A stretch of 64,000 nucleotides of DNA from Marsupella aquatica. Its lineage: Eukaryota; Plantae; Marchantiophyta. The stretch spans positions 3,782,480 to 3,846,479 of the forward strand of contig OZ316898.1 of the NCBI GenBank assembly GCA_973895155.1. The letters are read 5' to 3'. This document shows, piece after piece, positions 895 to 44,934 of the stretch (its first letter is position 1; each line of letters opens with the position of its first letter). A program made the translations under genes and the position numbers. Under the pieces are notes generated by a model. That model had not been told where the DNA came from. It did not search any database and was given only the letters and a program-made list of their open reading frames with translations.

Positions 895-1252
895 TGTCAT
901 GCCGAGGGACAGTGCCTCTTATGCACATCGGCATGTCCCTCGCATGCCCGCTAGGTATGTAGTTAGGGCTAGTGTACAACCTGAGTTAGCGACATGTTCT
1001 TATAGCAAATGCCAGGCGTTCTTGAAGCAAACGCGCTTGTTAGTGTGATGCCAGGACTTTGTTTACTTAGGGCATGTCTTTCTTTGTGGGTTTTCAGTTC
1101 TTCTTGAATCGCTGTCGACAGAGCTCAGACAGTGCTTGTCGGTTCCGCACACGGGATTCACAGAGTGATTCGTTAGATGCTCCCGGCCGATCTTGGCATC
1201 CCGCCGGTTTTCGATTCGATTTCAGTACACTTGTTTCTATCACGCCTTTTAT
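895..1252 (+). repeat. Split direct repeat A1 (358 bp)
   Basis: Matches 10461-10818 with 6 substitutions by manual alignment. Confidence 0.95.
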
Positions 1253-1789
1253 TCAAGAAGAACTGCTGAGATAGCGGTGAGGAGAAGAAGATTGCTCGTG
1301 ACGATTTTGACAATTTCTGGTGAAGCCATTGCAATTTCTTCGACGGAAATCGGAGGGACGAGTTGAAATTATGGGTTCAATATGGTGTTATGTGTATACT
1401 TAACATAAGTATACACATAACGCTCCTGTTGGAGCCCGACTTTTGCTTTCCGGTTGCATCTGGGGACCCTTTGCTGCTTTCGACTATGGCTGCCGGTTGC
1501 TGACTGCCACAACCTTTTTCGGGCCATATTCGGTGTTTTCCGGTCGCAGCGCGACCACCTTCCCTTTGCCTTACATTTTCACGACCCTTTGGGGTCCCGT
1601 TCTTTCTTTTCTCACCGGCCGTTGTTTCATTTCGCCTCCCCTCGCAGCTACCGTCGTGAGGTGCCTCCCAGTCCTGCCTGTGTATACACATGCGGGGCTC
1701 ATCATTGCCCTTGGGTCGCGCATAGGGCCACGCGCCCTCCCTTCGGCGTTTTTCTTCCTCCCGCGCCCGTTGCCAGCATCTCGGCCAGC

Positions 1790-2250
1790 ATTTAATTAAG
1801 CGCGAGGAGGGGGAGCCGACCAGGAGCACAAGCACAAGGAGAGGGCACGAGGCCCTATGAAGATTTAAAGAGGGAGGGGGAGTTAACGTCAACCCCCTTC
1901 GGGAGTCCTTCTGCCACTCTGCCAGGGCCCATTTCAGCATTAAAGAGGAGGGAGGGGGAGCCGAGCACCAGCCACAGAGGGGAGGGGGAAGCGAAAGGAG
2001 GGCACGAAGCCCTATGAGGAATTAAAAGAGGGGGAGAGAGGGAGTACATTTGACTCCCTCCTCTCGGGAGTCACAATCCTGCCAGGCACGAGGCCCTAGG
2101 CAGGATTAAACCAGGGGAGGGGACTCAGGGGAGTTCAATTTGAACTCCCTCACACGGGAGTGCTTTGTCAGGGGCGAGCACAAGGGCACGAGGCCCTATG
2201 GAACATTAGAGGAGGGGGAAGGTGCGCAAAGCCCTATGTAGGGCTCGAGC
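1790..2250 (+). repeat. Degenerate purine-rich tandem units with short hairpins in the element's 5' leader
   Basis: GGCACGA(G/A)GCCCTA followed by TTAAA-like and G/A-rich runs occurs near 1843, 2000, 2085 and 2184. Hairpins include GGGAGT-acatttg-ACTCCC (~2040-2058) and GGGAGTTCAA-t-TTGAACTCCC (2129-2149). Confidence 0.7.
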
Positions 2251-2882
2251 ACTTAAAGGCCCGTTTTTCTTTTCCCTCGCCTCGCCTTGGGTCTCGTCTT
2301 TTCCTTTCGCCCTTGCCAAAGCCGTTTTTCTTCTATTTCTTTTTCTGTTCCTCCATGGTCGCTCGTCCGCTGCGCAACGATTGCAGAGTCTTTCGACTCA
2401 CATGAGGGCATGTGCATAGGGCACCGCGGCCGGTCCCCACTATGACCATTTTTCTGCCAACGCCCTGCCCCCATGTGTATACACTTAATCGGGGCCCTTT
2501 TCTTTTAGTTTTTGGCCTTCTTGCTCCTTCGCCGTGCGACAACCGTCCCACCTACTTTTGCATACCTTTGCTGCCAGTTTCCGGGTCCACAAGGGGCCCA
2601 AGGTATACACGTAAAGGGGGCCCTCCTTTCACGTTCTAGGGGCCCGTTTTCCCTTATTCTTTGCTTCACCTATGTATACACATAGGTAAGTGCAACAAGG
2701 GAAACTTTGGTGGTTTTAATGGTCCTTTTTCTCCGGTGACGGTTTCTCCGTGTTTACACATTCTACATATTTCTGTCTTGCATCGTTTGTTTCCTTTGTC
2801 GGTTACATTTCCTAGCCTTGGGGTTGCCACACCTTTTTCTTGTCAGTTTCTTTCCCATTGGCACCCCGGGTGAGCATGCAGC

Positions 2883-4441
2883 ATGTCCGCAAAGGAGCCG
2901 AGTCGTAGCAGCTCATCGCCACTGACACCCAGGTACCACTTGCGGAGTGATCCACGGCCGTTGGTGCCAATTTCATTGGAGTCTCGGCAATTTTGATGAC
3001 GTCCGTAGATAGCAGCAGCACCCACACCACGCAATCCTCCTGCTACATTTGGCGGTCGCTTCACCACTACTCCGAAGCCTACTATCACTTCATTGCCATT
3101 TACCCCTTCTACATCAGTGGTTGTTCCTGCTTCACCGACATACAGCATGGATGCCAGCCACTCATCTGGCCGCATTGAGCGCTTCAGCGGGCGGCCAGGC
3201 ACTGTCTCTTTACGTGAGTTCAAATCCACTTTCTACACTGTCGTTTACGAATTGGAGTTGAAGTATGGCAGCAATTTCACAAATGCTTTTGCATTTAAGC
3301 AGCTAGCCAGGTATTGCACCATGAGGCTTTGGATATGTATGAGCAGCATTCTCAATGGCTGCTTGCTGTCACACAGTTGCCTAACCCTACCTATGCCAGT
3401 GCAATTGTGGCAGCCTCACAATTGGCCTTACAAAATGCCATTGCAGCCCATGCTGCTGCTCCTGCCACTTCCCCTCCTACTCCAGTTCCTACCACTGCGC
3501 CAGTTACTCCCACTGTCTTGGCACAGGCTACATCAGGCATTTCTCCCACCATTGATTCTCCTGCCTTTGCTGATCCAGTGGCTGAGTTTTTCCAGGTTCT
3601 TGAATTGGAATTCCCAATCAAGAGTGCTGACAAAATCATGCAGTTGGCCACCTTTGTGAGGCAGCGCGATGAAACCTTGAAGATGATGTATCGTCGGGTT
3701 CTCAAGCTGAAGGAGGACACCCAGAGCATCACTGACCTGGAAGCTGCTCACCGCTATCTTCGCGCATTGGAGGGCACACCAGCTCTCCATTGGCAAGTGT
3801 TGCAGCAAGTATTCTCAGAGTTTGGAGACAGCTACACACTGCTCAATGTCTATGACACTGCTGAGAAACTTGAGTTGGCCCATGCACATTATGAGGCCAG
3901 TATTGCGCGTCCACCGCGATCCAGGTACCAGGCTGCTGCCCCTACAATGGCCACCCCTTCCCGTGTGCCACAGTATGCTTCCAAGACCAAACCAGCACAT
4001 GCTGCTTTCATGCTGCCATCTTGCAACTACTGTGGCAATCCTAATCACAAGGCTAATGAATGTGATATTGTTGTTGAGGACCTGTCTTGTGATTTTTGCG
4101 GGAAAGTGGGTCACTTGGAGGTAGTTTGTTTTGCCAAATTCCCAGAGAGGAAGCAGCTACGACAACAGGCCACTCATCCTGCTCCTGTTTCCACTCCCCC
4201 ACCAGCTAGGAGGGCTCCTACTACATCAGTTGCTCCTCCTTCCAGTGGCAAAGCACCCAGTGCCAACAAATTGCCCAAGCAACAACAGAAGCAACCAGCT
4301 CAGAAGGAGGCTCACAATGCCCAGGCAACTCAACTCCAGTCTCTGACTCATGAGGTTGAGTCCCTACGTGCCCAACTTGCCAACATCAAAGGCAAATCAC
4401 CTACCTCTGCTGGTCCTTCTCAACCGGCTAGGCACGTGTAA
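2883..4441 (+). other. Gag region with two CCHC zinc knuckles
   Basis: CNYCGNPNHKANEC and CDFCGKVGHLEVVC (CX2CX4HX4C) at ~4022-4130. A capsid-like ERFSG...FKS segment lies upstream. Confidence 0.85.
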
Positions 4442-5219
4442 CCCATCTCTGGCCCAGGCACCACTGACAGTTCAGCATCTCTACCCCGCTCTTTCTATGG
4501 CTTGTCATTTGATGCTCATATGGGTGAGTGTGTGTTGTCCTCTACTCCATAGCCTGGCCTTACAGCAGAATTTTCAGATTCATTCTGCCCTTCCTATTTT
4601 GCTTACCAGCAGGCCAGTGCTGCCTCCCGTATTGCTCCCACACGCCGCATTGTACAGGCTGATGGTCTTGTTGTCGGTCCTATGACTAGAGCCAGGGGAG
4701 CTCGGGCTATCATGCCCCAATCTTTTCAACCACTCACACTTGCTGAAGAGCGCACCTTGTTGGCGAGGGGGGAGGGAGCTGCAGCTACATCCATTCCACC
4801 ACCAGGTGCTGCTGACATTTCACAGGGAGTTGTTTCTCTTGAGCTGCTCGAGCATTTCACCTCCAGTATAGCATAAAGGATTCTTACAACTCCACTTTTC
4901 AGTTGCCATGATTTACAACTGGATGCTAGAGCTGTCATCAGAGCGCTAGAGGGTTCACTACATTCTTCATCAGCCCCTGTGACACCGGTTTTGGAGGTCC
5001 AATCTCATGTACATACTGGACCTTCTTCTTCCCCATTACATGTTTCCACTGGTTTGGCTGCCCCAGTACCGATTGCTGCTGATTGTGTGACCAGAGCTAC
5101 ACTTGATTCTGGTCATGCTGCTCCATCTTTCCTGGCTATGTTGTTGAGTGGAAAGACCGTGGATACTAACTCCCTTCACAAGGTACCTCATCATTTGCCG
5201 AGAGTGGTGCCTAGTGATA

Positions 5220-5605
5220 GGACTTCAGTTTCCACCACCATTGCCATTGTTGACAACAGGAATTCAGTGGTCCAGTTGGAGGGTCACACTCCTCAGGTGG
5301 TCATGCTAGACACAGGTGCTCAACCAGTGATATTGGGCATTCAGTTTGCCAAGAAGATGGGACTGTTGACTGATCATTTACAGCAATCCAGGTGGCACAT
5401 TCGGACTGCTAGTGGCACTGTGGAGGACGTGCTGGGTGAGAGTTCTACTTTACTCACTCTCACTTTTAATGGAGGTACAGATCAGGAATTGCATTTCCCA
5501 GTCAGATGTTTGGTTACCAATGCCACTACGTATGATGTGCTCATTGGCCAGGAGGCTTTGTTCCCACCAGGTTTTACCATTGACAATTGGCATGAGCATT
5601 CATAG
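5220..5605 (+). other. Retropepsin aspartic protease domain
   Basis: VMLDTGAQ active-site motif, IRTASG flap and YDVLIG motif. Confidence 0.88.
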
Positions 5606-5968
5606 TACAGAGATGATTGGCATACGAATGGCTCACACTTGGGCTACATTCCACTTGATTTGCATGGTGCCCATACACCTATGGCTCACCACTGTGTGTT
5701 GAAAGCAGTGCACGCAGCTACCTTTGTCAACCACCCATTGTAGGATTGGATTGAGGATGATGATGAGGTGGCTACTGCACATGCTTCTGCACGTATAGCA
5801 GCACTTTCCAGCAACGTGGATCATCAACCAGAGGTGGTACAACGGCTCCAAGCAGCCCATGGACCTTTGGTGGCTGCATTGCGCAAATTTGAGGATCTTG
5901 GGCAGCACAATGGCCAACCAATAGCCCCAATCTTGAGCGCACCAGTTACATGGACTCCTCCTTCAGAT

Positions 5969-6915
5969 GGCCTTACATTGCTTGAGCTTTTTGGTGGCAT
6001 TTCTATAGGCCTGGAAGCTCTCCTACAGTCTGGCATGGTGGTGAAGCAGTACATCTATGTGGATATTGATCCAGGTGCAAGGCAAGTGGCTGAATCCCGT
6101 TTGCTGGAATTTTCAGAGCGATTTCCCCAGCAGCTTCCACACAGTGCATGGAAGTCTGCATTTTCTTTCTTTCCTCCAGATATCCAACTTGTCCAGCACC
6201 GGCACTTAACCCTTCTTGGCTCCCTTGATTTGATCATAGCTGGTTGGGAATGCCAAGGGTTTTCAGCTGCTGGTCACGGTGCTGGACTGCATGATTCTCG
6301 TTCTGGCCTTTTCACAACATTGGTTCAGATTCTCACCTGGGCTCAATCCCTTTATCCTGCTGTTGGTTATATCATTGAGAATACTCCATCTCAGTTTGAC
6401 CAGCGTCCACAGGTCAAAGAGGATTTCAGTGTGGTCCAGCACTACTTGGGACCACCCCTTCTCATTGATGCAGTGCACTGTGGTTCTTATGCACATCGTC
6501 TTCGTAACTTTTGGACTAACCTTGCACCACCTTCCTTGCTGGAGTTAGCTCTTCACCACACATCCAGGGACACTACCCTCATAGTGGACCAGATTTTGGA
6601 TCCTGACAGTTCTTGCCAACCAGTTACACGGCAAGAGTCAACACCTTGGTATCCAACCAATACCATTGGACAACCCCGTGCTGCTTGGCCTACATTTGTA
6701 TCCTTTCCAGGTGCACATGCCTTTCAGGGTGATGGTCCTGGCCTGGTTTATCGACATTCTACCGGTACATGGGATGAACCTAGTCCTGAGGAGAGAGAAC
6801 GGGCTATGGGCTTCCAATCCGGTACTACAAGTCACACCAAGATCACCAGGCTGGCCAGGAATGCTTTACTTGGCAGGGTAATGGATCTTAATGCTCTCAC
6901 TTGGCTTCTGGTCAC
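5969..6915 (+). other. DNA (cytosine-5) methyltransferase domain inside pol, between protease and RT
   Basis: C5-MTase motifs in canonical order: I LLELFGGI, II YVDID, III DIQ, IV IIAGWECQGFS (Cys codon 6251-6253), V DSRSGLF, VI YIIENT, VIII HRLRNFWTN, IX EERERAMGF, X LLGRVMD. No stop codon in the domain. Confidence 0.9.
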
Positions 6916-7399
6916 TTGCATCCTTTTTCAGATGTACATTCATCCAGCATCTGGAGTTCTAGCTCTCCCACTCCATGGTGCTGCTACATGGCATCCGGAC
7001 CAGGTGCACTTACCTCTATTCAACACTCACCGCTTCAGTCCAAGTGTTGGGGGGGAGGAGGTCCCTTGTAACGTGGCTGACAGTATTTCTGAGTTTCATG
7101 GTGTGGACCAACTCAGATCAGCACGTACAACAGGCCTTGGAGAGGCCTCATCACCTTATCAGCAACATGTTAGCAGCTTGGATAGTGGAGAGGCTGGCAC
7201 TTCTGGCTCTTCAAGCATGAGTACATCAGGTCCTATTCCTAGTGTTGCCAACTACACATTCATCATGGGCAACCACCTGAGTAAAAGACAGAAGGACGAG
7301 CTGCTGAATTTGCTCCTCAAGCATGAGAACATGTTTGCTTTCTCTATGAAGGACTTGGGTAAGTGCAAGACTATGCAGTTCTCCATTGAGTTGGCTGAT

Positions 7400-8060
7400 G
7401 AAACACCTATCTTCAGGCGGAGGCACCGTTTGAGTAAGCATGAGTGGCAACTGGTGGATGAGAGGTGCCAAGAGCTCTATGAAGCTGGTCTTATTCAACC
7501 ATCTACATCAGATTTTGCAGCAGCTACAGTGATGCCAACAAAGAAGGATTCCAGTGGATTATGGACAGAGAAGCGCATGTGTGGGGACTACAGGCCACTG
7601 AACTTGGTCACACCCCAGGACAGGTACCCCATGCCACGGCCAGAGGAGCTATTTGACAGCATTGGAGACTCAGACATCTTCACTCTTGTGGATCTAAGGC
7701 AAGGCTTTAACCAGATTTTGCTGCTTGCAAAGGACCGCAAGAAAACAACTTTCCATGGCAGTAACCAACTATGGGAGTGGTTGGTGATGCCATTTGGCTT
7801 GAAGAATGCGCCCATATTCTTTCAAAGAGTCATGGACCAGGTTCTTCAAGGTGCTGAGTTTCTGAAATGCTACATTGATGATGTGTTGGTCCACAACAAA
7901 GGATTTGACCAGCATCTACTTGACCTTGAGGAGCTATTCATGAGGCTTAAGAAGGTGAACCTAAAGATACACCCCAAGAAGTGTGAATTTGCTGTCAGAT
8001 TAGTAGTATACCTTGGGCACCGCATTCTTCCAAATGGAACCATGGCTCACTGGGCCAAGG
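7400..8060 (+). other. Reverse transcriptase domain (Ty3/Gypsy type)
   Basis: KRMCGDYRPLN, DLRQGFNQI, MPFGLKNAP, YIDD (7871-7882) and YLGH motifs. Confidence 0.95.
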
Positions 8061-8289
8061 TGGTATCCATCTTGGAAATGCCCACTCCTACCGATGTTCA
8101 CACTTTGAGGAGTTTTATTGGGTTGTGCAATTACTACCGGATCTACATCAAAGATTTCAGCACCATTGCACACCCATTGTATGCTTTGTTGAAAAAGAAT
8201 GTGACTTGGACATGGAGTACAGATGCTGAGGCAGCATTTGCCACTTTGAAGGAGAAGCTCTCAGAATACCCGGTGCTGAGAAGACCTGA

Positions 8290-8670
8290 TTTCAGCAAGG
8301 TCTTTGTGCTACACACAGATTGGAGTGCCCTTGGGATTGGTGCCATTCTGGGCCAGCATGATGAGGAAGGTAAAGAGTACGTCATTGCCTATGCATCCAG
8401 GAGCAACAATCAGGTAGAGAGTCATTATTCTTCGTATGAGGGTGAATGCCTTGCTGTTGTGTGGGTTGTCATACATTACAGGCCCTACCTCTATGGGACC
8501 AGGTTTGTCCTCTACACCGACCACCAGCCCTTGAAGTGGTTGATGACCAATGACAAGCTTATTGGCAAGCTTGCTCGTTGGGCGCTCATACTCCAGGAGT
8601 ATGACTTTGAGGTAATTCATAGGCCTGGTGTGACACATCAGAATGCTGACACTATGTCCCGTAGCCCTTT
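8290..8670 (+). other. RNase H domain (Ty3/Gypsy type)
   Basis: FVLHTDWS..GIGAIL, IAYASR, YSSYEGE, YTDHQPL, ARWAL and NADTMSR motifs. Confidence 0.93.
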
Positions 8671-8959
8671 GATTACCTCTGATGATTCCTCAGATGCACG
8701 ACAGGATTTTGACCAGGTTTCCATCCTGCCTATATTTCATGCATCTACCTATCTTGCTTTGCTGCCATGCTACATTGTTGACCAACCTGTGGTGGACATA
8801 TTGGAGGACAGCGACACTCTGAGATTTCTGCAGCATGGCGAGTACCTCACCCATGTTACTGCTGCCCAGAGAGACCGAATTCAGCAAAGGTCCAAGCGCT
8901 ACTTGTGGAAGGGGGATCATCTTGTGCGCTGCCTGCTAGACAGGGAAGTGGTGGTTCCA

Positions 8960-9800
8960 CCCATTCATGAGAGGGTTGGCCTTATCCGTAAGGTACATTC
9001 TGAGCTTGGTCATTTTGGTGTTAAGAGGACTTATAGCCTCTTGGTCCCCCATTATCATTGGAGAGGCATGCATGGCCAGGTTTGAGATGTTATTGCCCGG
9101 TGTGAGCAGTGTGATAGGGTAAGGACTTCTTTCACATCTCGGCAACCCACACTTCATCCACTCCCTATTCAGGGCATGTTTTATCGTTGGTCATGTGATT
9201 TGGCTAGAGAATTACCCCTCACATCTCGGGGTAATCTCTACATCATGATCATGATAGAGCATTTCTCCAAGTGGATAGAACTTGTGGCATTGCCGGATAA
9301 GACCTCCCGTAGCACCAGCCAGGCATTCTTGCAACAAGTTCTCAGTCGCTTTGGAGCTTGTGCAGAATGTCTCACTGACCAGGGATCAGAGTTCAGAGGA
9401 GAGTTCCAGGAGCTGCTTGATCAGGCCCTCATTGATCATCGCCAAACGTCACGAGATCACCCACAAGCAGATGGCTTGGCAGAGCGCATGGTTCAGACAT
9501 GCAAGAAGGGTCTCCGGAAGATCTGCCTCACCAAAAACAAGGAGAATTGGGACCTGGCCTTACCCTACATTGCCATGGGGTATAGGATGTCCAGACATGC
9601 ATCACTGTCTAACTTTTCTCCCTACTTGTTGTTGTTTGGTCGTCACCCAGTTCCACCTTCTGCTATTGCTACTCACATGCTTCAGGTGGTGGACTTGGAT
9701 TCAGCTGTGACTTGGTCTGATGTGATCTCTGAGAGGGCTGCCCTATTCAGGAGGGTTATGCCCATGGCCATGGAGAATTTGGCCATTGCACAGCACAGGG
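8960..9800 (+). other. DDE integrase (HHCC zinc finger plus catalytic core), interrupted by TGA at 9083
   Basis: HSELGH...CEQC zinc finger. Catalytic triad in WSCD, LTDQGSEF and PQADGLAER. Confidence 0.92.
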
Positions 9801-10090
9801 ACACACTGCGTTATGCACACACACGAGGGGGCACTTTTCAGCCCAAGGTCAGGAAGTTTGATGTGGGAGATTTTGTGTACTTGCAGCGGCAAGCTAACGA
9901 CACCCTGGACACCTCTACCAGTCGTACTATTCTCAGGGTTAAAGCTATTCGACCGTCTGGAGTGCTAGAGTTACAAGGGGCAGATGGGCGCACAATTGCT
10001 GACAATGCCAAGAATTGCGCCCCTTGTCATCTGCCTAACCTGGATCCCACCATTGTGACTTCTACCTGGATTCCACCTGTGGACTACCCT

Positions 10091-10225
10091 TGCAAAGTGT
10101 GTTTGCGAATTGATGATGCTGACCAGATGCTGCTGTGTGACAATTGCAATGGAGGGTACCATCTTTTCTGCCTTCGGCCTGAACTTACCCAGGTGCCAGA
10201 AGGGTTATGGTTTTGCCCTTCCTGT
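10091..10225 (+). other. C-terminal PHD finger (C4HC3) fused to integrase
   Basis: CKVC-LRIDDADQMLL-CDNC-NGGY-H-LF-C-LRPELTQVPEGLWF-CPSC. Confidence 0.92.
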
Positions 10226-10282
10226 GCTCCACGTGCTACCTGAATTTTCTTCAGCCCTCCTTTTGGCTGTGGTCTGGGGGGG

Positions 10283-10458
10283 ATACAAAGGTTTACACCT
10301 CCACTACGTACATACCACTTCATTTGCTTTTTCTTGGCACTTGTGAATGTGATTGGACTTTTTCTATGCATGTTGGTTGCTAGCAGCTTGCACATATGCC
10401 TTGCCGGTGACTTGTATGTTTTTGATACACTATGGCTACGATACTATATGTCACGACA
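10283..10458 (+). repeat. Split direct repeat B1 (176 bp), preceded by a G7 tract (10276-10282)
   Basis: Matches 10819-10994 with 3 substitutions and ends in CACGACA. Confidence 0.95.
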
Positions 10459-10460
10459 GC

Positions 10461-10818
10461 TGTCATGCCGAGGGACAGTGCCTCTTATGCACATCGGCAT
10501 GTCCCTCGCATGCCCGCTAGGTATGTAGTTAGGGCTAGTGTACGACCTGAGTTAGCGACATGTTCTTATAGCAAATGCCAGGCGTTCTTGAAGCAAACGC
10601 GCTTGTTAGTGTGACGCCAGGACTTTGTTTACTTAGGGCATGTCTTTCTTTGTGGGTTTTCAGTTCTTCTTGAATCGCTGTCGACAGAGCTCAGACAGTG
10701 CTCGTCGGTTCCGTACACGGGATTCACACAGTGATTCGTTAGATGCTCCCGGCCGATCTTGGCATCCCGCCGGTTTTCGATTCAATTTCAGTACACTTGT
10801 TTCTATCACGCCTTTTAT
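10461..10818 (+). repeat. Split direct repeat A2
   Basis: Copy of 895-1252, starting TGTCATG and separated from B1 by only GC. Confidence 0.95.
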
Positions 10819-10994
10819 ATACAGAGGTTTACACCTCCACTACGTACATACCACTTCATTTGCTTTTTCTTGGCACTTGTGAATGTGATTGGACTTTTTT
10901 TATGCATGTTGGTTGCTAGCAGCTTGCACATATGCCTTGCCGGTGACTTGTATGTTTTCGATACACTATGGCTACGATACTATATGTCACGACA
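10819..10994 (+). repeat. Split direct repeat B2 (element 3' end)
   Basis: Copy of 10283-10458, followed by the TSD TGGG. Confidence 0.95.
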
Positions 10995-11139
10995 TGGGGT
11001 GGATTTCATCTAGCTAGGGCCAAAGGGCAGGGCAAGCAAGGAGGGTGCATTGGGGGCCTCATTTGTCTGATCCAATTCAACAGCTGGGCAGAAATCTTGG
11101 GCTCACCTTCATTTTGTTTCAACTCCTTTGTGGAATGAT

Positions 11140-11320: not shown

Positions 11321-13259
11321 GAAGGATATTGAGCTAGTGAACTACAGAAAAGAAAGTTGTCCCATTTGGTATCTAACCATACCCAATAAGCAAACCCGGG
11401 TTGGGTGGGAGACCTCCAATAATTATAAAGTTTTGTGCGCGAACCTTTATTGTCTCTACGGTACACTTCACTGAACTTTCAGCTTTGCTTGACCGTCACG
11501 ACACCAGAATTGGCAAACGTGTGCGCAGGTGGGCCAGGCGCTCCTAGCACGCTCCCAGAGTCCCACTACAGAGAATGCTACCCTAGTATCCTTTTGCCAG
11601 TGGGCTTGATCAAGCGCGTCGCATATTTGAGCCCCATATCACTGCAGCCCGAAGCTTCACTTCCATGACGGCTCTTTGGCCACTTTCCGCTTATATGCTT
11701 GAATCTTCCATATCCAGCCAGGCGATGGCACCAAAGGCGCCGCCTATTCAATATTGTTGAACACAATGTCCAGCATCCAGCTGGTTGTGAAGCGAGAAAG
11801 CCCTCCTCTCACAGGTTTGACAATGTCCTCTTTTTTACGCACATGGCAGTGCACGATTCTCCCAAGTGAGTGCCACATTCGTTAGCTATGTCTCTCCGAC
11901 AGTGGTGAATTGAGTCTATGACTATACCTGGTCCATGTCTCGTGGAAACCGAGCTGTCCCTGCTCAGATCACCGCTACTTGTCCTTCTAGCTACCTGACA
12001 TTTTAGGAGATTGTCGATCCTTTTGATTAGTTTGAGGTACGTACCAATTTCTGTTCAGACCGTTAAAAATTGAATAGTGGCCTCTGACTCTTCCTTGCAA
12101 CTAAATTGTGCAGTCCTTGTTCTTGCAAGCGAGACAAAATTTCGAGATCCGAATCCCAAAAATTCAACTCGGGAAGAGTCCCAGTCATCAGATGAGGGTG
12201 CATGAGGTGCAATAATTAGTCCCTTCCAATATCTTTTGGGACAATGGGAGACGTTGAGAGCAATTTCTTGCCGTTTTGGACTGATTGCACAATCCCGACT
12301 TAGACCCACACACATTTGAAAGCATGCACTTTCTCTTAAGACAGTTGATGGCAAATGTTTCCTGTAGAGTGAGTACTACTAATTGGATGCACAATGCTAT
12401 CTGGGATTTAGCCGAGCTGAATGGTTAAAAATATTCAAGCATATAAGCCGAAGGTGGTGATGCTCTTTGGCCTTACCTCATTTACGGTTCAGGGGAAATT
12501 CGAGCTATCGACTACCGGTAGTCGTATTGTCGGGCACCCGCACAGCTCAACTTAGCATTCCGCAGCTCGTCTGCATTGTGTGCGCTTTGCACGAATCGTC
12601 TCACCAGATTGAATGGGCGTCGGACCAGAACACTCCCTACTACCCTTTAACCCGAATACATCCAGGGTTTAGGGCTACAAAAACCTTCTCGAGTGAAGGT
12701 CCTTGCGACGTGTACACTGCCTGAGGATCGAGCTGCCCTGTCTTTAGTACAGTTCCTTAAAGTCGATGCTTGAGCTTTGTGACATTGGCGTCGAGGTCGA
12801 TGAATCGTTCGCATCAGTTGTTCCTGATGGTAAGTGATGGTAATTTTAAGGCTTGTGGATGCCATGGTCATCGATCAGAGCTTTGAAAACAACCTTTTCA
12901 AAAGCAAATGCTCAATAAGATTGAGGGAAACTGAGCGTCAGGCTCGTGGATTGGACCGACTAGACATTATCTCACCCACTGCACTTTACACTTTTCTTCG
13001 TCCTGAACAACCAGAAAATGGACACCACTCATAAAACGAGAAACTCAAGCTCCCATAATTATATCACAACATTGGAAAAGATGTACCTGCTTTCCTGAAT
13101 GCTCACAATCTGTATTTAACACTCTGGAGGATGATTTTCTTACTAAGGTAGCACCTTGATCAACAAATGCCCTTCATCTCGGCATCAACTTCAATAATGC
13201 CGGTTTCCAAATGGTTTTAAACCACAACTGCCCTTCAAAAGCTACGGGTTACCCATAGT

Positions 13260-15767: not shown

Positions 15768-16520
15768 GCTGCTAGTAGGACAAGTAGTAGCGGTGATCAC
15801 CGGAGACGCAATGGTATCGGAGCAGGGAGAGCTCGGCTGTTCACCAGGCGTGGAGCCCGTGTAGTCATAGCTGACATTCAAGACTCTCTAGGAGAGAAGG
15901 TAGCTAACGAATGCGGCCCCCAGGCACAGTGTGTGCATTGCGATGTGCGAAAAGAAGAGGACATTGGGAAAACCTGGAAGACGGCCTTAATTCTCGCTAG
16001 ACAACAAGTTCGACATAGGTGTTCAACAATGCTGGAACAGGGGGCACATTTTCTACCATCGGTGAGCTGAACATGGAGAAATTCGATACCGTCATGGAAC
16101 TGAATCTTCGTGCTGCGGTAATAGGAGTCAAACTTGCTGTCCGCTTGATGAAGCCCGCTGGCAAGGGTAGCACTCTGTGTACCTGAAGCATTTTGAGCGT
16201 GCTAGGAGGAGTTGGCCCATCTCCTTCCAAGAATTTCGGAATTTGCAGTCGTGGGTCCGGTCAAGCAAGCTGGTGCAGAGCTGAAAGACCACGGAATTAG
16301 AGTCAATGCCTGCTGCGGTTCTAACTCCAAGCATGTGGAAAACAATCCAAGCCACTAGGAAGGAGCTTGGCCTAGAAATCCTGGACAAGATGAAGGAGGC
16401 ATTCTCGAAACGGGTGCTATGATTCTCAACAACCACACCTTAGGCGTAGGGGACATTGCCAACGCTGCTTTCTATCTGGTTTCAGACATGGGAGCGGACA
16501 CAACTTGTTAGTGGATGTGC
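15768..16520 (+). pseudogene. Short-chain dehydrogenase/reductase pseudogene (ABA2/secoisolariciresinol-dehydrogenase-like)
   Basis: VAVITG..NGIG, GARVVIADIQD, HCDV, VFNNAG, FDTVMELNLR and ELKDHGIRVNA are spread over several frames, with stops and a damaged YxxxK region. Confidence 0.8.
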
Positions 16521-33456: not shown

Positions 33457-36400
33457 CTAGACTCTGAGATCCACCGTGGAGAAGCCATTGCCCTTTGTGA
33501 CATTAAAACTGTTGCTAACATTCCTTCCCTGCACGTTAAGAGTATATTCTCCTTGGAACCCACGGAATGCAATTTGACCCTGTTGATCGGTCACACCCTG
33601 AAAACTGGTCAGCCACTCTTTCTTAAGAGCAATAAAGCGACGCCCGCATTCATTGACTCTCTTGTCCGAATCAACAAGATGAGAGTTTTTTCTGCACATC
33701 GAACCTTCCCAGAATCCCCACAGCATGAAACCCTCCACGGAAGGATGGGCATAAGCTTCTCGTAGAATCACCTCCAGATCATCTGCCCTCAAATATTCAT
33801 TGACAGATTCAACATCTACCTCGGTGAACCAGATTGGAAGCCCAAGTGTACTAAGCTCATTGAGAGCCTGTTCAATGATGGGTCCAATTGGGACGTTCAG
33901 ATGACCTTGAATACCAATTCCTCCAATTGGTGCACCATTGGACTGTAGGTCGCGAATATGCTCGATGTATTTCTGGGGTGAAGCGTTGGAGTCTTCCCCA
34001 TCCTCAACATGGTAGTCGTTAACAAAGAGAACGGCCTGTGGATCGAATTGATGTGCCAGTTGGAAAAGGTATGGCCAGAACTGAGGGCCCAACTTATCCT
34101 TGTAGAATGATCCATGAAGCATCTCATTATTCACGTCATAATGTTTGAACTGACCGTGGTATCGTGTCAGGAGGCCGCTGACCCTATCCTGCACAGCTTC
34201 TGCAAGTTTTTGGGCATCCAATTTCTTTAACCAATCCTGTACAGTATCCTCTGTTTCCCAAAGGATGCAATGACCTCGCATTAAAATCCCATTACGGTTG
34301 CAGAACTCCACCATTTCGTCGGCATCGTCATACTTCAATTTGCCTTGATTCGGTTCTGTCCATCCCCACTTGATCTCGTTGTCAAAAACTGCCCAGTTAA
34401 ATTGCTCAACAAAAAACTTTGTGTATCCCTTGTTGGCAAGATTCCATTGACTGATACAAGTTCCGAGAGGGAAGCTATTTTTTGTTTGTTGAATGGTAAC
34501 TGGTATGCCGGGACGAAGTGGACGGCCATTCGAGTCTTGGAGCCTGACAACTACATCACACTTACGAACCTACAAACAACAATGCCACATACATTTTCAG
34601 ATTTAAGGAGAGGCAAATAATTGATGAACCAGACAAGTCTGGTGCCAGTCCATGTACAAACACCTCAAACATGTGATTCTCACTCCAACATTTAAATCAG
34701 AGGTTCCTATTTTATGCATGCAATAGATCCTCGCTTCCTGTCATAAACATTTGTCCCTCAATCTCTCGTTTTATTACAGTTAAAGAATTCATTCTCCTCC
34801 CAAAGATGTTCAATTAATCTTATAACATACCTTGTCTGTTTTCTCCTTTAAATAAGGTACGCGTGCCAACCGGTCAACTGCAAATATATGGAGGCCTGCC
34901 ACCTTCATGTCTATACCTGGGGCAGGGCCTTGAAAGTAAACAATAACTTTTTCAGGCTTTTTTTCAAGCCGAAGAGAACCAGAAACCTCGGTCCAATCTG
35001 TACCTGCATACACCTCCCCGCCTTGCACCCACGCCCCATCCACACCTAAGGCAACATTAACTCTTTGGGGCGTCAGAATACCACGAGAACCGGGAGGGAG
35101 GGCTATTGCAACCCATGCAGTCACTTGGTATGTATTGAAGAGCTGAAGTTTCTCTGTGATTGTTTGTCCAGGACCTTCCCAAACCTGCGTCCGATTTGAT
35201 ACATAGAGAAACCTGCCGTGCAAGCCTGGTGCCGGAGAACCGATAAAAGATCTGACTGCATTTGCACCTAACATAAGAGGGCTGCCAGGCGAAATAGTCA
35301 AGCGACAATTTCCCATAGGATACCAGGCACCCAGCCCACCTTCCAAGTTGCTGTTGCCAATAACATTCACCCCAAACATTGGGTCCTGCATAGAAGAATT
35401 TGTTAATCTTATTTACTATTGCCACAAATACTACACTATACTAATGAAAAGATTTTGTGATCGATGCATCATTGACCAAATCCTGAGAGAAAAATTATTG
35501 TAAATGTTCAAAAATCAATCCAGGATAAAGGAAAGTTGGGCACCTTAAGTGCTGGTGGACCTGTAGGCCTGGCTCGAACTGGAATGAACATTGCAAAATT
35601 GTCTACCAAAAGATCAGTACCTCCCGGTGGACCTTCGAGGTAAACTGTAGCCAGCTTTGGTAGCTTATTCACAAGAAATTCTCCTTTCAGCTCCGTCCAG
35701 TGTGAATTAAATGCCTTTCCCCTAATAACAAGTAAATCTCAAATAGAATTAGTTTCCAAATTCATGACACCATCGGTGGAAAGATAAAGCCTAGTGTATT
35801 AAATACCCATGCAACTATAACCATTATTCGACGACACCGCAGTCCAAAATGTGAACAAGCAGATTGAGGTTGCTCTAACATTACTCGAGAGACGAGTCTA
35901 GCAGACAATTATTGGCTTTCAGGTATATATTTCCAGGTTATTGTGAAATCGTTATCGTGAAGTGAAAACTATGTCTCGCAATCTTTCCCTGAGTATCCCT
36001 GAAGGTGCACTATAGAAGGAGGGTTTGTAGTACTGGATGAGGGACTGTACGGAATGGACCTTACAATACGCAGGAGTCCTGCAAGAGGATTAGAAAAAAT
36101 TAACTACCAGTGATCACTTACTTTGCAAGAGTGATGTATTGATCCTTATTGTCCATTCCTTTCAGGTAGAGGGTGGCCAGCACATTTGCTTCAGCAACAT
36201 TCCCACGAATACGAATTTGACCTGTTACACTATAGAGCATACTCTCTTCTATACGTCCTGTGATTTCCTGTTCAATCCCCTGCCATCCCTCAGTCCTGTT
36301 TCCTGCAACTGCAAAGAATTTTCCTGTCGCAGGAAGAATTCTGCCATTATCTAGACTCTCACACACATATATGTTGCAGTTTTTTGCCCTCCATTCTCGC

Positions 36401-38494
36401 AAACCGTCTGTAAATCCTGAGTTTTGGACCAGGATTCGCGGATTACCACTCACTGTTAACTTTCCCTGTCACAAGACACAATTACAAAATTGATTAAGTA
36501 AGAGGAGAAGACGCTGACCACAACCTACGCTGCCATAATTCCCCTAAAAGGCTGTCTGGATTTTCACTCACCAGCAGGGTGTCTTGAAACAATCGGAGCA
36601 TCTAGGTGTTATATTTTTTGTTCAGTTTACTTAGAAAAGAAAGATAATTGATCAATCCACTTCAAGAACCATTGGTATAAACAATTTTCATGCATCAAAT
36701 GGGAATCTATGCAGCGAGGACGGCAAATATTGAGGACGTCACTAATTTTGAGAAAGGCAGCAAGGGAGTTATCTCTGGGAGTTTTGAAAAGTGTCAGTCA
36801 TCATGGAATATCTGAGACCAACCACATTCAAGTTTTGAACTAATTTGTGGCACAATTCTTCCTAACTTCCACTTACCTAACAAAATGAGAGTAGCTCGAA
36901 TTATGATTGCAACTTCCCTCTTTCATACTTCAGGCTTGGCGAGGCAATTATTCCATGTGGTATGACCGGTCACGGTGTGTCACTCAAATCACAGCTGGAT
37001 GAGACCAAATAACGCACCCAAGAAATCCAAGTTTGCTCACCTGATCATCCGAAATTTGAAGACGCTCAATTCCCTCAATACCCTGCCGGAAGAGGCGAAG
37101 GAGAACCATATCAGACATGCCTTTATTACTTACAGCAAAAATATTCCAAGAACACTCGTAAGGAACGACGGTCCTATGGCTCCCCGCAATGACAACACCA
37201 CGATGAACAGACCTGGCTCGAACTCTATCTCACAACGATGCAATGACAGCAAAGAGATCTACTAAGTAGGCCATCTCAAGACGTTAAATAGTTGTATCAT
37301 GGCCCGAATGATCTCAGAAACAAAATTCTACTAGTAACTCTGACCGAGAGATCTAACATTCAGAGTCGGGATAACTGACTAGGATTTCACGTCCTTAACA
37401 TATGAAGAACATATAACTCCTGGACGTATCGGACAAGATTCGCAAAAGCCTGAGAAATTGTTTCAGCAACTTGATGTGCTGTAAGCTTTTGATTCTCCCT
37501 TAAAACTGAGAGATTAGTCTTTTTGGGACTTAAGAGTTCTGTGCCCTTCCAATTCTTACGTTTATAGAGCGACCTAACGAATGATCATCAATTCAACAAG
37601 TTCAGACAAGACTTCATCCCAGTAGGAGGTAACACCTGCCAACATTCTCAACTGAAAACCGAAGCTGTGGAGATTAGAGCGAAACATACCGCTTGAGTCT
37701 GCGGCACTAAAGGAATTATAGCAACGCTGCTGACTAGAATATCAATCCCAGGGCTTGGGCCCTCGAAGTACAAAATTGCCTTGGCTGGCAGTTCATTGAG
37801 CCGAAGCTTCCCTGAAAACAAACTCCACTTTCCTTCTGTAACGGCCACGCTGCATAGATCAGCAGCTGATAATTAGCAAAGAGGCCCAAGACCCAGCTCA
37901 TAGAAATGGCAGAGAAGCTGCAAAGTCCGTAGACACGGCTTTCTCTTTGCCATACGCGATGAGCCATGTCACAGCAAAAGACTACAAGAACCCCTTACAA
38001 AAGTGGCTTCGACTCGAATGAGGGAGAAGGAATGAATGAAGGAAACAGTCTAACCTTCCTATCCAGATAAAATTTTCGCCTCCTGAAGCCTTCTCCGCCT
38101 TCAGGGTACAAATCACTTCTGCATCCTTTGCCTCGGCGCCAATCCCAACCCATGCTTCCACTCGATATTCCACGTCGATCTCCAGCCTGTCGCCGATCTC
38201 TTGAGCCAGCCCCTCCCATGTATTTTTTCGGCCATGGGCAATGCAATAGGTGGAACCACCGAAGGTGCCCAAGGAGAGACTGCAACCAAGCCCGAACCAG
38301 CCCTGTGTTCCATCGGCAAAAGTGGGATTGACCACAATGTTGAACGGCGGAGGAGCAGAATTCGAGTAAGCGGTCGTTTGGGCTGAGGCCTGCTGCGCAT
38401 GCTGTGCAGCAGTCCTCTCCGCTAGGCTCCCCATCATTGTCTTCTTCACCAGATCTTTGCCTTTGCGGCTCAAAGACCCCAACACTTTGCTCAT
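33457..38494 (-). CDS. GH10 endo-1,4-beta-xylanase with three N-terminal CBM22 (CBM_4_9) modules, ~929 aa, 6 exons
   Basis: Exons 38494-38055, 37849-37690, 36465-36122, 35721-35544, 35385-34831 and 34569-33457 are GT-AG and frame-consistent. Motifs MRGHCILW, YDVNNEM (acid/base) and WFTEVD (nucleophile). Confidence 0.92.
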
Positions 38495-42486: not shown

Positions 42487-44934
42487 ATGACAACGAAAGC
42501 ACTTTGGGTGGATGGCTGGTCAACTCCAGCATGGGTGAAGGCAAGACTCCAATTGATTACTCAAGGCAGAGGGAAAACTAGTGCTAGCTATGGCACCAGA
42601 GATTGGTCTCAGGACACTGCACAGGCGAATGGCAGTAGGCACATGAATTGTGCTGGTACTACGAGTGAAGCAATTGCTGTCTTGACGAATCGTCTACAAC
42701 GAGGCATTACTACAGACTCGCACACGTATGTTAAAGTTCTGCAAATGTGCTGGAAATATAAAGACTTTTTAGCGGCCAAGCAGGTTCACAAGTGTATCAT
42801 CAAGAGTGGAATTGAGAAGAATTCATATGTGGCGAACACCCTCCTGAATGTGTATATCAGATGCGGTGGGTTTTTGGATGCGCGTCGAGTTTTTGATGAA
42901 CTTGAGACGAAGAGTGTTCTTACCTGGAACATGATGATTACAGGATATGCTAAGAGTGGCCATGGTGAATCTGCTCTGGAACTTTTCAATTTGATGCGCC
43001 AAGAAGGTGCGCGGCCTAATGCAGTCACATATCTGGGCATCCTGAAGGCATGTGCCAGCCCATTAGCTCTAAAATGGGGAAAAGAAGTTCATGCGTGTAT
43101 GCGAAATGCTGGGTTTGAGTCAGATGTGCGTGTAGGGACTGCCCTCCTTCAGATGTATGCAAAGTGTGGGTGCATCACGGAGGCCAGGCGGGTTTTTGAA
43201 GAAATGGCTAATCGAAATCTCATCACTTGGAATGTGATGATTGGTGCGTATGCCGCAAGTGGCAATATGGATGATGCCCGGCTAATGTTTGACAGCATGA
43301 AAAAACGAGATCTATTCACATGGAATATAATGATTGGAGCATATGCAGCAAGTGGTCGTGGTGTGGAAGCATATCGATTGTTTCTCGAAATGAGACGGGA
43401 AGGGTTCGAACCAGATGCCATCACTTATATGAGCATCCTGAATGCATCTGCAAGCGAGGGGGCCTTAGAGTGGGTGAAAGAGGTTCATGGCCATTGTAAG
43501 AAAGCGGGACTGGATTTGGATTTGCGTGTGGGCAATGCACTTATCCACATGTATGCAAAGTGTGGGTGCATCACGGAGGCAAGGCGAGTCTTTGAGAAAT
43601 TGACTAATCGAGATTTCATCTCATGGAATGCCATGATTGGTGCGTATGCCGCAAGTGGCAATTTGGATGACGCCCGACTAATGTTTGACAGAATGGAAAA
43701 ATGCGATGTAATCACATGGAACATAATGATTGGAGCTTATGCAGAACGCGGTCGTGGTGTGGAAGCATATCAACTATTCCTCCAAATGAGACGAGAAGGC
43801 TTCCAACCAGATGCAATCACTTATATGAACATACTGAATGCATCTGCAAGTGCGGAGCCTTTAGAGTGGGTGAAAGAGGTTCATGACCACGCTAGCAAAG
43901 CGGGGCTGGAGTCAGATTTGCGTGTGGGCAATGCACTGATTCACATGTACGCAAAGACCGGCCGTATAGGTGACGCCCGACTGGTTTTTGACAGACTAGT
44001 GAAACGCAATGTATTCACGTGGACCACAATGATCGGTGGACTTGCACAACATGGTTGTGGTCGTGAAGCCCTGGAACTCTTTAGAAAAATGAATGCGGAC
44101 TTTGTGAAGCCCGACGGGACTACATTCGTGGCATTGTTATCAGCCTGTTGTCATGCAGGCCTTGTTGAAGATGGCCGTAGACTCTTTCTAGCTATGACGC
44201 AGGATTATGGCATCGAGCCAGATATTTTTCATTATACCTGCATGGTGGACCTTCTTGGGCGGGCTGGACACTTGGAGGAAGCAAAGCTCTTGATTAGTGA
44301 CATGCCAGTTGAACCGGGTGTAGTAACTTGGAAAGCCTTGCTTGGGGCTTGTAGAACTCACGGTAATGTGGAGTTGGGCGAACTTGCTGCTAAAGAGCTG
44401 TTTAAGTTGGAACCGAATAAGGACTCTACATATGTGCTCCTCTCCAACATCTATGCTGCAGCTGGCAAGTGGGAGAAGGCGTCATTGGTGCGCACTATGA
44501 TGCAAAAGGGAGGTGTTCGGAAGGAGCCAGGGCGTAGCTGGATTGAGGTTGATAACAAGATCCATGAATTTGTTGTAGGGGACACATCTCACCCAGAAGC
44601 GAAGGCGATATATACTGAGCTCAATAAATTGACTAAAAAACTCAAGGCTGAAGGCTACATGCCCGAAACCCAGATTGTATTGCGGAACATCGATGAGGGG
44701 GATAAAGAACTAGCTCTTTGTTCTCATAGTGAGAAGTTGGCTATTGCGTACGGACTGATGCGCATACCCGTGGGAAAACCAATTCGTGTGTATAAAAACC
44801 TTCGGGTGTGTTCAGATTGCCATACAGCAACCAAGTTTATCTCTAAGGTGACGGGACGCGAGATTATAGCCAGGGATGCAATTCGCTTTCACCATTTTAA
44901 GAATGGTTTGTGTTCTTGTGGTGATTACTGGTGA
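42487..44934 (+). CDS. PLS-class pentatricopeptide repeat protein with E and DYW deaminase domain (organellar C-to-U editing factor)
   Basis: 815-aa intronless ORF with P-L-S repeats, PGRSWIEV (PG box), HSEKLA...CSDCH and a C-terminal DYW. The start codon is uncertain. Confidence 0.95.
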   Translation: MTTKALWVDGWSTPAWVKARLQLITQGRGKTSASYGTRDWSQDTAQANGSRHMNCAGTTSEAIAVLTNRLQRGITTDSHTYVKVLQMCWKYKDFLAAKQVHKCIIKSGIEKNSYVANTLLNVYIRCGGFLDARRVFDELETKSVLTWNMMITGYAKSGHGESALELFNLMRQEGARPNAVTYLGILKACASPLALKWGKEVHACMRNAGFESDVRVGTALLQMYAKCGCITEARRVFEEMANRNLITWNVMIGAYAASGNMDDARLMFDSMKKRDLFTWNIMIGAYAASGRGVEAYRLFLEMRREGFEPDAITYMSILNASASEGALEWVKEVHGHCKKAGLDLDLRVGNALIHMYAKCGCITEARRVFEKLTNRDFISWNAMIGAYAASGNLDDARLMFDRMEKCDVITWNIMIGAYAERGRGVEAYQLFLQMRREGFQPDAITYMNILNASASAEPLEWVKEVHDHASKAGLESDLRVGNALIHMYAKTGRIGDARLVFDRLVKRNVFTWTTMIGGLAQHGCGREALELFRKMNADFVKPDGTTFVALLSACCHAGLVEDGRRLFLAMTQDYGIEPDIFHYTCMVDLLGRAGHLEEAKLLISDMPVEPGVVTWKALLGACRTHGNVELGELAAKELFKLEPNKDSTYVLLSNIYAAAGKWEKASLVRTMMQKGGVRKEPGRSWIEVDNKIHEFVVGDTSHPEAKAIYTELNKLTKKLKAEGYMPETQIVLRNIDEGDKELALCSHSEKLAIAYGLMRIPVGKPIRVYKNLRVCSDCHTATKFISKVTGREIIARDAIRFHHFKNGLCSCGDYW

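Follow-up and report, generated by a model that had tools for sequence, protein, structure and literature searches.

A decayed Gypsy-type retrotransposon with a DNMT3-like domain, a PHD finger and split direct repeats, and its relatives from chlorophytes to liverworts

Positions 895-10994 of the window, by which we mean the whole 64,000-nucleotide stretch of contig OZ316898.1 analyzed here, hold on the + strand a single inactivated insertion of a Ty3/Gypsy-type retrotransposon that carries a DNMT3-like cytosine-5 (C5) DNA methyltransferase domain and a PHD finger. Window coordinates are used throughout. The element is of the Gypsy-DNMT3 kind, which has already been published from Klebsormidium, so that its occurrence in a land plant is only partly new. 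Our reading as a whole, to which we assign a probability of roughly 0.7, is that of an inactivated Gypsy-DNMT3 insertion in a bryophyte, from a family whose functional copies would methylate themselves, be steered by the PHD finger at integration and replicate through an intermediate in which the two ends of the element are joined. The interest lies mainly in the Marchantia relatives and in the unexplained combination of an integrase with split repeats, not in the window copy.

All coding parts of the element share one frame (that of 3299) between 3299 and 10240. They follow the Ty3/Gypsy order of protease, reverse transcriptase (RT), RNase H and integrase, with Gypsy-type domains, preceded by Gag with two CCHC knuckles and followed by the PHD finger; the methyltransferase is an extra domain between protease and RT. 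An annotation made earlier from the letters alone, here called the sequence-only reading, had described the same series as one reading frame: the order stands, whereas the open frame is lost to six stop codons and a frameshift in gag. The frame pieces between stops were searched separately, and stop codons were replaced by X in scripted analyses. Gag was delimited by tblastn against three relatives: L001, from the JGI metagenome 3300027860, which also contains a PPR-DYW gene; L002, from ENA; and L003, on chromosome 4 of Marchantia polymorpha (AP019869.1).

3093-4438, + strand: Gag, with CCHC knuckles at 4022-4063 and 4088-4129 (tblastn to L001, L002 and L003); stops at TAA 4439
4877-5602, + strand: aspartic protease, LDTGA at 5306-5320 (PF13975, E 4.3e-8); flanked by the stops at 4874 and 5603
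5900-6940, + strand: DNMT3-like C5 methyltransferase domain (PF00145, profile, fold)
7250-8698, + strand: RT and RNase H, YIDD at 7871-7888 (PF00078, 4.5e-26; PF17917, 1.1e-36; PF17919, 2.2e-31)
8900-10000, + strand: integrase, H2C2 and DDE, with TDQGSEF at 9374-9394 and DGLAER at 9470-9487 (PF17921, PF00665)
10091-10225, + strand: C-terminal PHD finger, C4HC3 (PF00628, E 4.6e-12); the polyprotein ends at TGA 10241-10243

The Pfam scan gave no match to a chromodomain, whose place is taken by the PHD finger, and no tyrosine recombinase domain was found in the element; it has instead the DDE integrase of PF00665 together with 4-bp target duplications.

The methyltransferase domain is predicted to belong to the DNMT3 type, with DNMT3A/B/C as the closest class. 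Its Pfam match to PF00145 exceeds the cut-off (26.6 bits against 22, E 5e-6), which bears out the C5 methyltransferase named by the sequence-only reading, and covers the motif IV region only. In a sequence search of the PDB with the domain alone, DNMT3A was the best solved relative (E 8e-7). A profile of four family sequences found DNMT3A/B/C at about 1e-21. Plant DRM matched more weakly (1e-13 to 1e-9), as did the bacterial enzymes HaeIII and HhaI (1e-8 to 1e-7), and DNMT2 reached about 5e-7 at best; neither DNMT1 nor the chromomethylases (CMT) occurred among the matches of this profile to solved structures. An AlphaFold (AF2) model from a 46-sequence alignment reached a predicted local distance difference test score (pLDDT) of 95.2 and replaced an earlier, poor model from four sequences (pLDDT 55). 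The best 50 Foldseek matches of the new model in the PDB are all catalytic domains of DNMT3A/B/C, with a template-modelling (TM) score of 0.85 on the target, a root-mean-square deviation of 2.6 A and about 20% identity. The domain thus resembles the catalytic domain of animal DNMT3A/B as its best match in sequence, profile and fold and in the order of motifs I to X, and differs from these proteins in its approximately 20% identity, the lack of PWWP and ADD domains, the Glu-Cys and ENT residues of motifs IV and VI, and a longer region between motifs VIII and IX. The motifs are non-permuted, unlike those of DRM:

5987-6004: motif I, LFGGIS
6242-6265: motif IV, GWECQGFS, with the catalytic Cys codon at 6251-6253
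6371-6388: motif VI, IIENTP
6494-6514: motif VIII, HRLRNFW
6788-6814: motif IX, EERERAMGF
6866-6886: motif X, LLGRVMD

The canonical order given by the sequence-only reading holds for I, IV, VI, VIII, IX and X; in sequence, motifs IV and VI depart from the consensus. Cys118 (catalytic), Glu160 (motif VI) and Arg200 (motif VIII) are invariant in 46 relatives, and the residues of motifs IX and X are nearly so. A scan of viral contigs with the family profile returned a single, partial match, 48% identical over 56 residues of the motif IV-VI region (L005, IMGVR_UViG_3300044799_000109, positions 3462-3617), which is probably an unrelated viral C5 methyltransferase.

The PHD finger, also claimed by the sequence-only reading and upheld by the PF00628 match, shows the C4HC3 pattern of zinc ligands and sits at the C-terminus of the integrase, the place of the chromodomain in chromoviruses. 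Its closest solved relatives are the PHD fingers of WSTF, CHD4, KDM5, BAZ2A/B, ATXR5, UHRF1 and AIRE (E 1e-16 to 1e-8), most of which we take to be readers of the unmodified histone H3 tail (H3K4me0); in sequence the finger is similar to this group of readers.

Comparison of the window with itself revealed two pairs of direct repeats, A and B, which occur in the element in the order A1, internal region, B1, GC, A2, B2:

891-894: left copy of the target-site duplication, TGGG (right copy at 10995-10998)
895-1252, + strand: repeat A1, 358 bp, left terminus, beginning TGTCATGCC; 98.3% identical to A2
1253-3092, + strand: non-coding leader, without coding similarity to relatives before about 2930
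10276-10282, + strand: G run resembling a polypurine tract, immediately 5' of B1
10283-10458, + strand: repeat B1, 176 bp, ending CACGACA; 98.3% identical to B2
10459-10460, + strand: GC spacer of two bases that separates B1 from A2
10461-10818, + strand: repeat A2, partner of A1
10819-10994, + strand: repeat B2, right terminus, ending CACGACA

These repeats and the target duplication confirm 895 and 10994 as the exact ends of the element. The ends are conserved as TGTC...GACA, of the TG...CA type, and together with the short target duplication they agree with Ty3/Gypsy. The repeats do not: the two flanking long terminal repeats (LTRs) of Ty3/Gypsy are replaced by split direct repeats, with A1 at the 5' side and B1-GC-A2-B2 at the 3' side. 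The GC spacer and its flanks form a 10-bp palindrome, GACAGCTGTC, where the two termini of the element meet end to end, and the same palindrome is formed in the Marchantia copy L003. A1 and A2 differ at six positions, five of them transitions; over A and B together 9 of 534 positions differ, by eight transitions, five of which fall at CpG. The motif TCAAGAAGAACTG directly follows A1 in both the window and the Marchantia copy, and a G run precedes B1 at the matching place in all three copies inspected (window, L001 and L003). The window contains no second copy of the element. A near-perfect 35-bp palindrome lies in the leader at 1387-1421, about 135 bp past A1, and perhaps serves in priming or packaging.

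The A1...B1-NN-A2-B2 layout is not a peculiarity of the window copy. It recurs in L001, in L003, where the repeats are 99-100% identical, and in the metagenome copies L022, L031, L063, L074, L079 and L083. In every relative examined the inner B1-A2 junction consists of the right end, exactly two bases and the left end, with GC, AC, GT, AT and TC as spacer variants. We fixed the ends of each copy by the conserved TGTC...GACA before scoring target duplications, and counted L012, which is identical with L001, once. Perfect 4-bp duplications, each with a chance of 1/256 per copy, flank seven of the nine independent complete copies:

window, TGGG
L001, GGTC
L003, GGTT
L022, CCAA
L063, TTTT
L079, ATAA
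L083, CCTA

In the remaining two, which are older copies, the duplication agrees at three of four bases. Duplications of 4 bp are what a DDE integrase would be expected to leave, and such an enzyme is predicted from the coding sequence. The contigs of L004, L008 and L009 are too short to include termini, and in Haematococcus (L006) nesting with another element makes the repeat layout unresolvable.

The methyltransferase is a family-wide component. The first protein search recovered 45 polyproteins with a DNMT domain, the closest of which (72-73% identical) are on metagenome contigs, followed at about 43% by the M. polymorpha proteins Mp_4g09160, MARPO_0063s0090, MARPO_0204s0011 and MARPO_0020s0163 and then by Closterium NIES-53/54. 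M. polymorpha has four PF00145 proteins of this kind and a fifth partial match, annotated in the reference as hypothetical proteins, and the copy on its chromosome 4 is apparently intact. The order Gag, protease, DNMT, RT, RNase H, integrase, PHD is kept in L001, L002 and L003 (tblastn) and also in L008 and L009, and the presence of the methyltransferase at the same place in Marchantia, Closterium and metagenome relatives answers a doubt raised with the sequence-only reading, that the domain might be missing from other family members. Searched by profile, 1.84 billion cluster representatives gave 17,004 matches with E<=1e-3, of which 472 reached E<=1e-30. The top 150 extend from short pieces with one domain to polyproteins of up to 3,456 residues, and no host enzyme stands out among them. 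A scan of JGI metagenomes added 80 loci (L010-L089) of 58-75% identity, all from a few samples, and the domain set is unchanged in all 31 that span protease to PHD. Contigs Ga0209611, Ga0116227, Ga0116229, Ga0116231, Ga0209208 and others contain dozens of copies and are plant-like. In the hosts sampled, the window's clade is abundant and heavily decayed, as a high-copy family of a bryophyte.

Selection was estimated by the Nei-Gojobori method, as the ratio of non-synonymous to synonymous change (dN/dS), between L001 and L002. For the DNMT domain of the window against L001 or L002, the proportions of non-synonymous (pN) and synonymous (pS) differences are 0.17-0.19 and approximately 0.73; the latter is saturated, so only L001 against L002 gives a usable ratio. 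This is 0.10 for DNMT, 0.056 for RT-RNase H, 0.057 for integrase and 0.03 for the PHD finger, compared with 0.32 for the linker. The dN/dS test proposed with the sequence-only reading thus shows purifying selection on the methyltransferase; this domain and the PHD finger alike are conserved under selection as components of the polyprotein throughout a large family.

Two architectures occur within this family. In type I the DNMT domain stands between RNase H and integrase (RT-RH-DNMT-IN-PHD); its named hosts are the chlorophytes Monoraphidium, Haematococcus, Chromochloris, Hariotina, Enallax and Tetradesmus, and the Enallax and Tetradesmus proteins are complete open reading frames (ORFs) from transcriptomes. 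Type II, in which DNMT lies between protease and RT, comprises the Marchantia and Closterium elements together with the window copy. Of the first 191 family proteins approximately 108 were of type I and 39 of type II; a later search brought the total to 282, with 196 of type I, 42 of type II and 44 unassigned. A single change separates the types on the unrooted DNMT tree, with a support of 99 for the type II set, and the RT tree, rooted on one long-branch outgroup (a neighboring chromodomain-PHD Gypsy), recovers type I with support 98 and type II with 86. The two trees give the same split: in each of two sister lineages DNMT has therefore traveled together with RT. The simpler way to read these trees is a single capture and, after it, a single relocation. 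In Haematococcus lacustris a Gypsy element whose integrase has a chromodomain as well as a PHD finger (L006:3539-6923, minus strand) adjoins the type I DNMT element.

Within type II, the Marchantia-type ORF1 (Gag-PR-DNMT) ends at a TAG codon (L003:13835-13837, L008:4459-4461, L009:4969-4971), followed by CAA CAA, CAG TTA or CAA CTA, after which RT-RH-IN-PHD continues in frame. This context is of the tobamovirus-like leaky UAG-CAR-YYA form, and in about 18 type II proteins the C-terminus lies 75-125 residues past the DNMT domain. The arrangement suggests programmed readthrough, by which the methyltransferase would be made with the abundant Gag portion; at this site the window's clade lacks a stop.

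The closest described system is KnitGypsy-Dnmt3 of Klebsormidium nitens (de Mendoza 2018, PMC5890265), a kind called streptophyte 'Gypsy-DNMT3' in papers of 2025-2026. That element has a non-rearranged DNMT3-type domain in Pol, Gypsy content, an A-coding-B-A-B arrangement of repeats as in DIRS, and a Ka/Ks below 0.2 for DNMT (PMC5890265). The family described here shares with it the non-permuted DNMT3-type domain in the Pol of a Gypsy-type element, the repeat layout (as given in the paper's legend to Fig. 4c) and purifying selection on DNMT (Ka/Ks<0.2 there and approximately 0.1 here). It differs in its hosts, a land plant (most likely a liverwort) for the window copy and Marchantia, Closterium and chlorophytes for the relatives; in the documented 4-bp duplications and two-base end-to-end junction; in the ECQ form of motif IV; and in the C-terminal PHD finger, of which the paper's text makes no mention (PMC5890265). 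The sequence-only reading had singled out a land-plant element with a methyltransferase: the bryophyte genome stands, while the event is not unique, as relatives are annotated in Marchantia and the kind is published from Klebsormidium. Our literature search returned no paper on land-plant copies, including those of Marchantia, or on the chlorophyte sister lineage, and none on the PHD finger, the ECQ state, the 4-bp duplications or the two-base junction of these elements.

Other retrotransposons share single traits with the family. The SymbioDIRS-Dnmt3 elements of Symbiodinium likewise combine a DNMT3-type domain in Pol with A-coding-B-A-B repeats, and two of their domains methylate CG de novo in yeast, the only retrotransposon DNMT so shown (PMC5890265); they are set apart by a tyrosine recombinase and an RT of the DIRS type from the present family, which has a DDE integrase, a Gypsy-type RT-RNase H and target duplications. 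The A1-internal-B1-A2-B2 order is also that of Ngaro/PAT-like DIRS elements, which again use a tyrosine recombinase where the present elements have a DDE integrase, TG...CA ends and 4-bp duplications. Like chromoviruses, the family has a chromatin-reader domain fused to the integrase C-terminus; the chromovirus chromodomain directs integration into marked chromatin, whereas here a PHD finger takes its place and a DNA methyltransferase is added. Transposons, those of green algae above all, are known to carry PHD fingers as accessory domains, and an LTR retrotransposon of Chlamydomonas has been cited as having one (Perez-Alegre 2005). The idea that the Chlamyvir clade carries PHD fingers was not borne out by the literature found.

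We propose that in functional copies the protease would free the DNMT3-like enzyme, which could then methylate the new element DNA, or the insertion and its surroundings, so that a new copy would enter the genome carrying host-like cytosine methylation. The PHD finger may tether the integrase to H3K4-unmethylated, non-promoter chromatin. Writer and reader together would yield insertions that do little damage and quickly become quiescent, with a self-limited copy number. If the LTR is taken as B-NN-A, the genomic order of the repeats would be a circular permutation of a two-LTR circle opened at the palindrome, and this order suggests replication via a circular or junction-containing intermediate. 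Replication via such an end-to-end junction, with split repeats and 4-bp duplications, would be a mode not described for integrase-encoding retrotransposons. In its strongest form the proposal holds that functional members such as the apparently intact Marchantia chromosome 4 copy are self-contained writer-plus-reader elements of a land plant, in which an active DNMT3-like enzyme, also in its Glu-Cys form, methylates the element's own DNA, an H3K4me0-binding PHD finger steers the integrase, and replication is novel and passes through the junction intermediate. We advance this full version tentatively and consider it unlikely to be right in every part.

A number of results weigh against the reading given at the outset. 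The window copy is an ordinary dead insertion: in-frame stops interrupt it at 4439, 4550, 4874, 5603, 5741 and 9083, the last within the H2C2 zinc domain of the integrase, and the 5' part of gag is in another frame, with a frameshift near 3305-3315, so that this copy cannot make the polyprotein. Decay is general in its clade, as 79 of the 80 JGI loci have 1-12 stops within the 347-codon DNMT domain and frameshifts are frequent; no working copy was seen among the window copy and these 80 metagenome relatives. In the window, L001 and L002, motif IV reads ECQ instead of PCQ and motif VI reads ENT instead of ENV, while the Marchantia copy L003 has PCQ and ENV, as does L004. Across 273 family domains the motif IV position is Glu in 130 and Pro in 109, with 13 switches on the tree; Glu is therefore recurrent in the family and tolerated, and does not reflect decay of the window copy. 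In yeast, no methylation was obtained with the Klebsormidium domain; the authors call this outcome inconclusive (PMC5890265), and human DNMT3B also failed in this assay (PMC5890265). No K. nitens sequence is present among the family search matches or the paper's supplements, and kinship with KnitGypsy-Dnmt3 is argued from shared features only. No green-lineage host DNMT3 or DRM occurs among the 150 listed representatives, and the DNMT tree is hence unrooted. Finally, no tRNA-type primer binding site, including one of TGG type, was recognized after A1, and the replication model is therefore speculative; tRNA and Rfam scans of the window were likewise empty.

Some of these results could be accommodated by a domain that selection keeps for something other than DNA methylation, be it binding of DNA or RNA, an RNA 5-methylcytosine (m5C) module or a role in particle structure. 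The replacement of Pro by Glu in the Pro-Cys pair and of ENV by ENT in the window's clade, the presence of Glu in about half of the family after repeated switches, and the negative yeast result for KnitGypsy-Dnmt3 all fit such a role. It is harder to reconcile with the catalytic Cys, the motif VI Glu, the motif VIII Arg and the motif IX and X residues, which are invariant or nearly so in 46 relatives, with the prediction at pLDDT 95 of a complete DNMT3 fold that includes the S-adenosylmethionine-binding motif I, or with a dN/dS of approximately 0.1, and the yeast negative loses force by the failure of human DNMT3B. We consider a non-methylating role unlikely, although it deserves to be kept in mind. 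The likeness to KnitGypsy-Dnmt3 might also be convergent, the liverwort and chlorophyte family having gained its DNMT3-like domain independently. Recurrent capture of methyltransferases by retrotransposons is documented, the family itself has two domain positions, and no K. nitens protein is among the named matches; against this stand three unusual shared traits (a non-permuted DNMT3-type domain in Pol, Gypsy content and the A-coding-B-A-B layout) and the single split that DNMT and RT trees have in common within the family. Independent gain strikes us as rather improbable.

The remaining alternatives concern the locus itself. Conserved domains, and the annotation of the Marchantia copies as genes, could indicate a domesticated gene that serves the host. 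Against this, the window copy has six stops and a frameshift and is bounded by terminal repeats and a target duplication, its relatives are multi-copy and mostly decayed, and the Marchantia repeats are 99-100% identical, as is typical of a recent insertion; we rejected this explanation as very improbable. A one-off capture, a nested fragment of a host gene or an assembly chimera at the window locus would explain the weak, partial Pfam match, and nothing else. The domain is family-wide: copies in other genomes, 37-75% identical, have it at an unchanged position and in the same frame. It has no introns, is under purifying selection and lies within a unit flanked as a whole by target duplications. 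This explanation was likewise discarded, as one to which we give next to no credence. The reading of an inactivated Gypsy-DNMT3 insertion, with relatives that would be self-methylating and PHD-steered, is the one that we retain.

Why a transposon carries an enzyme that normally silences transposons has been a question since 2018, and Symbiodinium and Klebsormidium, the only hosts reported until now, are difficult experimental organisms. Marchantia polymorpha is genetically tractable and has an apparently intact, young copy, which makes the function of a transposon-borne DNMT testable: whether the new cDNA is methylated, whether transposition is limited or helped, and what the PHD finger binds. 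The family also far exceeds previous accounts in size and age, with hundreds of 50%-identity clusters from chlorophytes to liverworts and two domain orders, and the integrase-inserted structure with split direct repeats is a replication puzzle in itself.

The host of the window copy is a bryophyte, most likely a leafy liverwort, judging from a neighboring gene. An intronless PPR-DYW ORF at 42487-44934 shares 65-70% identity with proteins of Calypogeia fissa across its entire length and 51-60% with moss proteins, which agrees with the embryophyte host named by the sequence-only reading. Exact look-ups of four proteins of the window gave no match, and the species is absent from the protein collection searched. 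DYW editing factors are a land-plant trait, and Marchantia, to our knowledge, lacks them. ORF pieces with a GH10 xylanase and CBM_4_9, all on the minus strand (33457-35391, 37982-38494 and 52865-54547), suggest two or three tandem intron-containing GH10 genes, single ORFs having been scanned. Downstream of the element an inverted repeat of approximately 165 bp and 75% identity (11812-11973 and 15813-15976, 3.8 kb apart) possibly marks the ends of another transposon.

Two further observations concern the element's own sequence. The TGA in the integrase zinc domain occupies the same codon in the window (9083-9085) and in L001 (13019-13021), copies of about 75% nucleotide identity from different genomes, while L002 and L003 have sense codons there; either recurrent mutation or something shared could account for this. 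The ratio of observed to expected CpG is 0.26 in the coding part (3299-10240) and 0.74 in the leader (1253-3000); the repeats have 0.88-0.97 and the 53 kb of flanking sequence 0.61. TpG (1.42) and CpA (1.61) are in excess in the coding part. The CpG depletion must predate the insertion because the repeats have diverged by only 1.7%; in the apparently intact Marchantia copy the ratio is 0.74.

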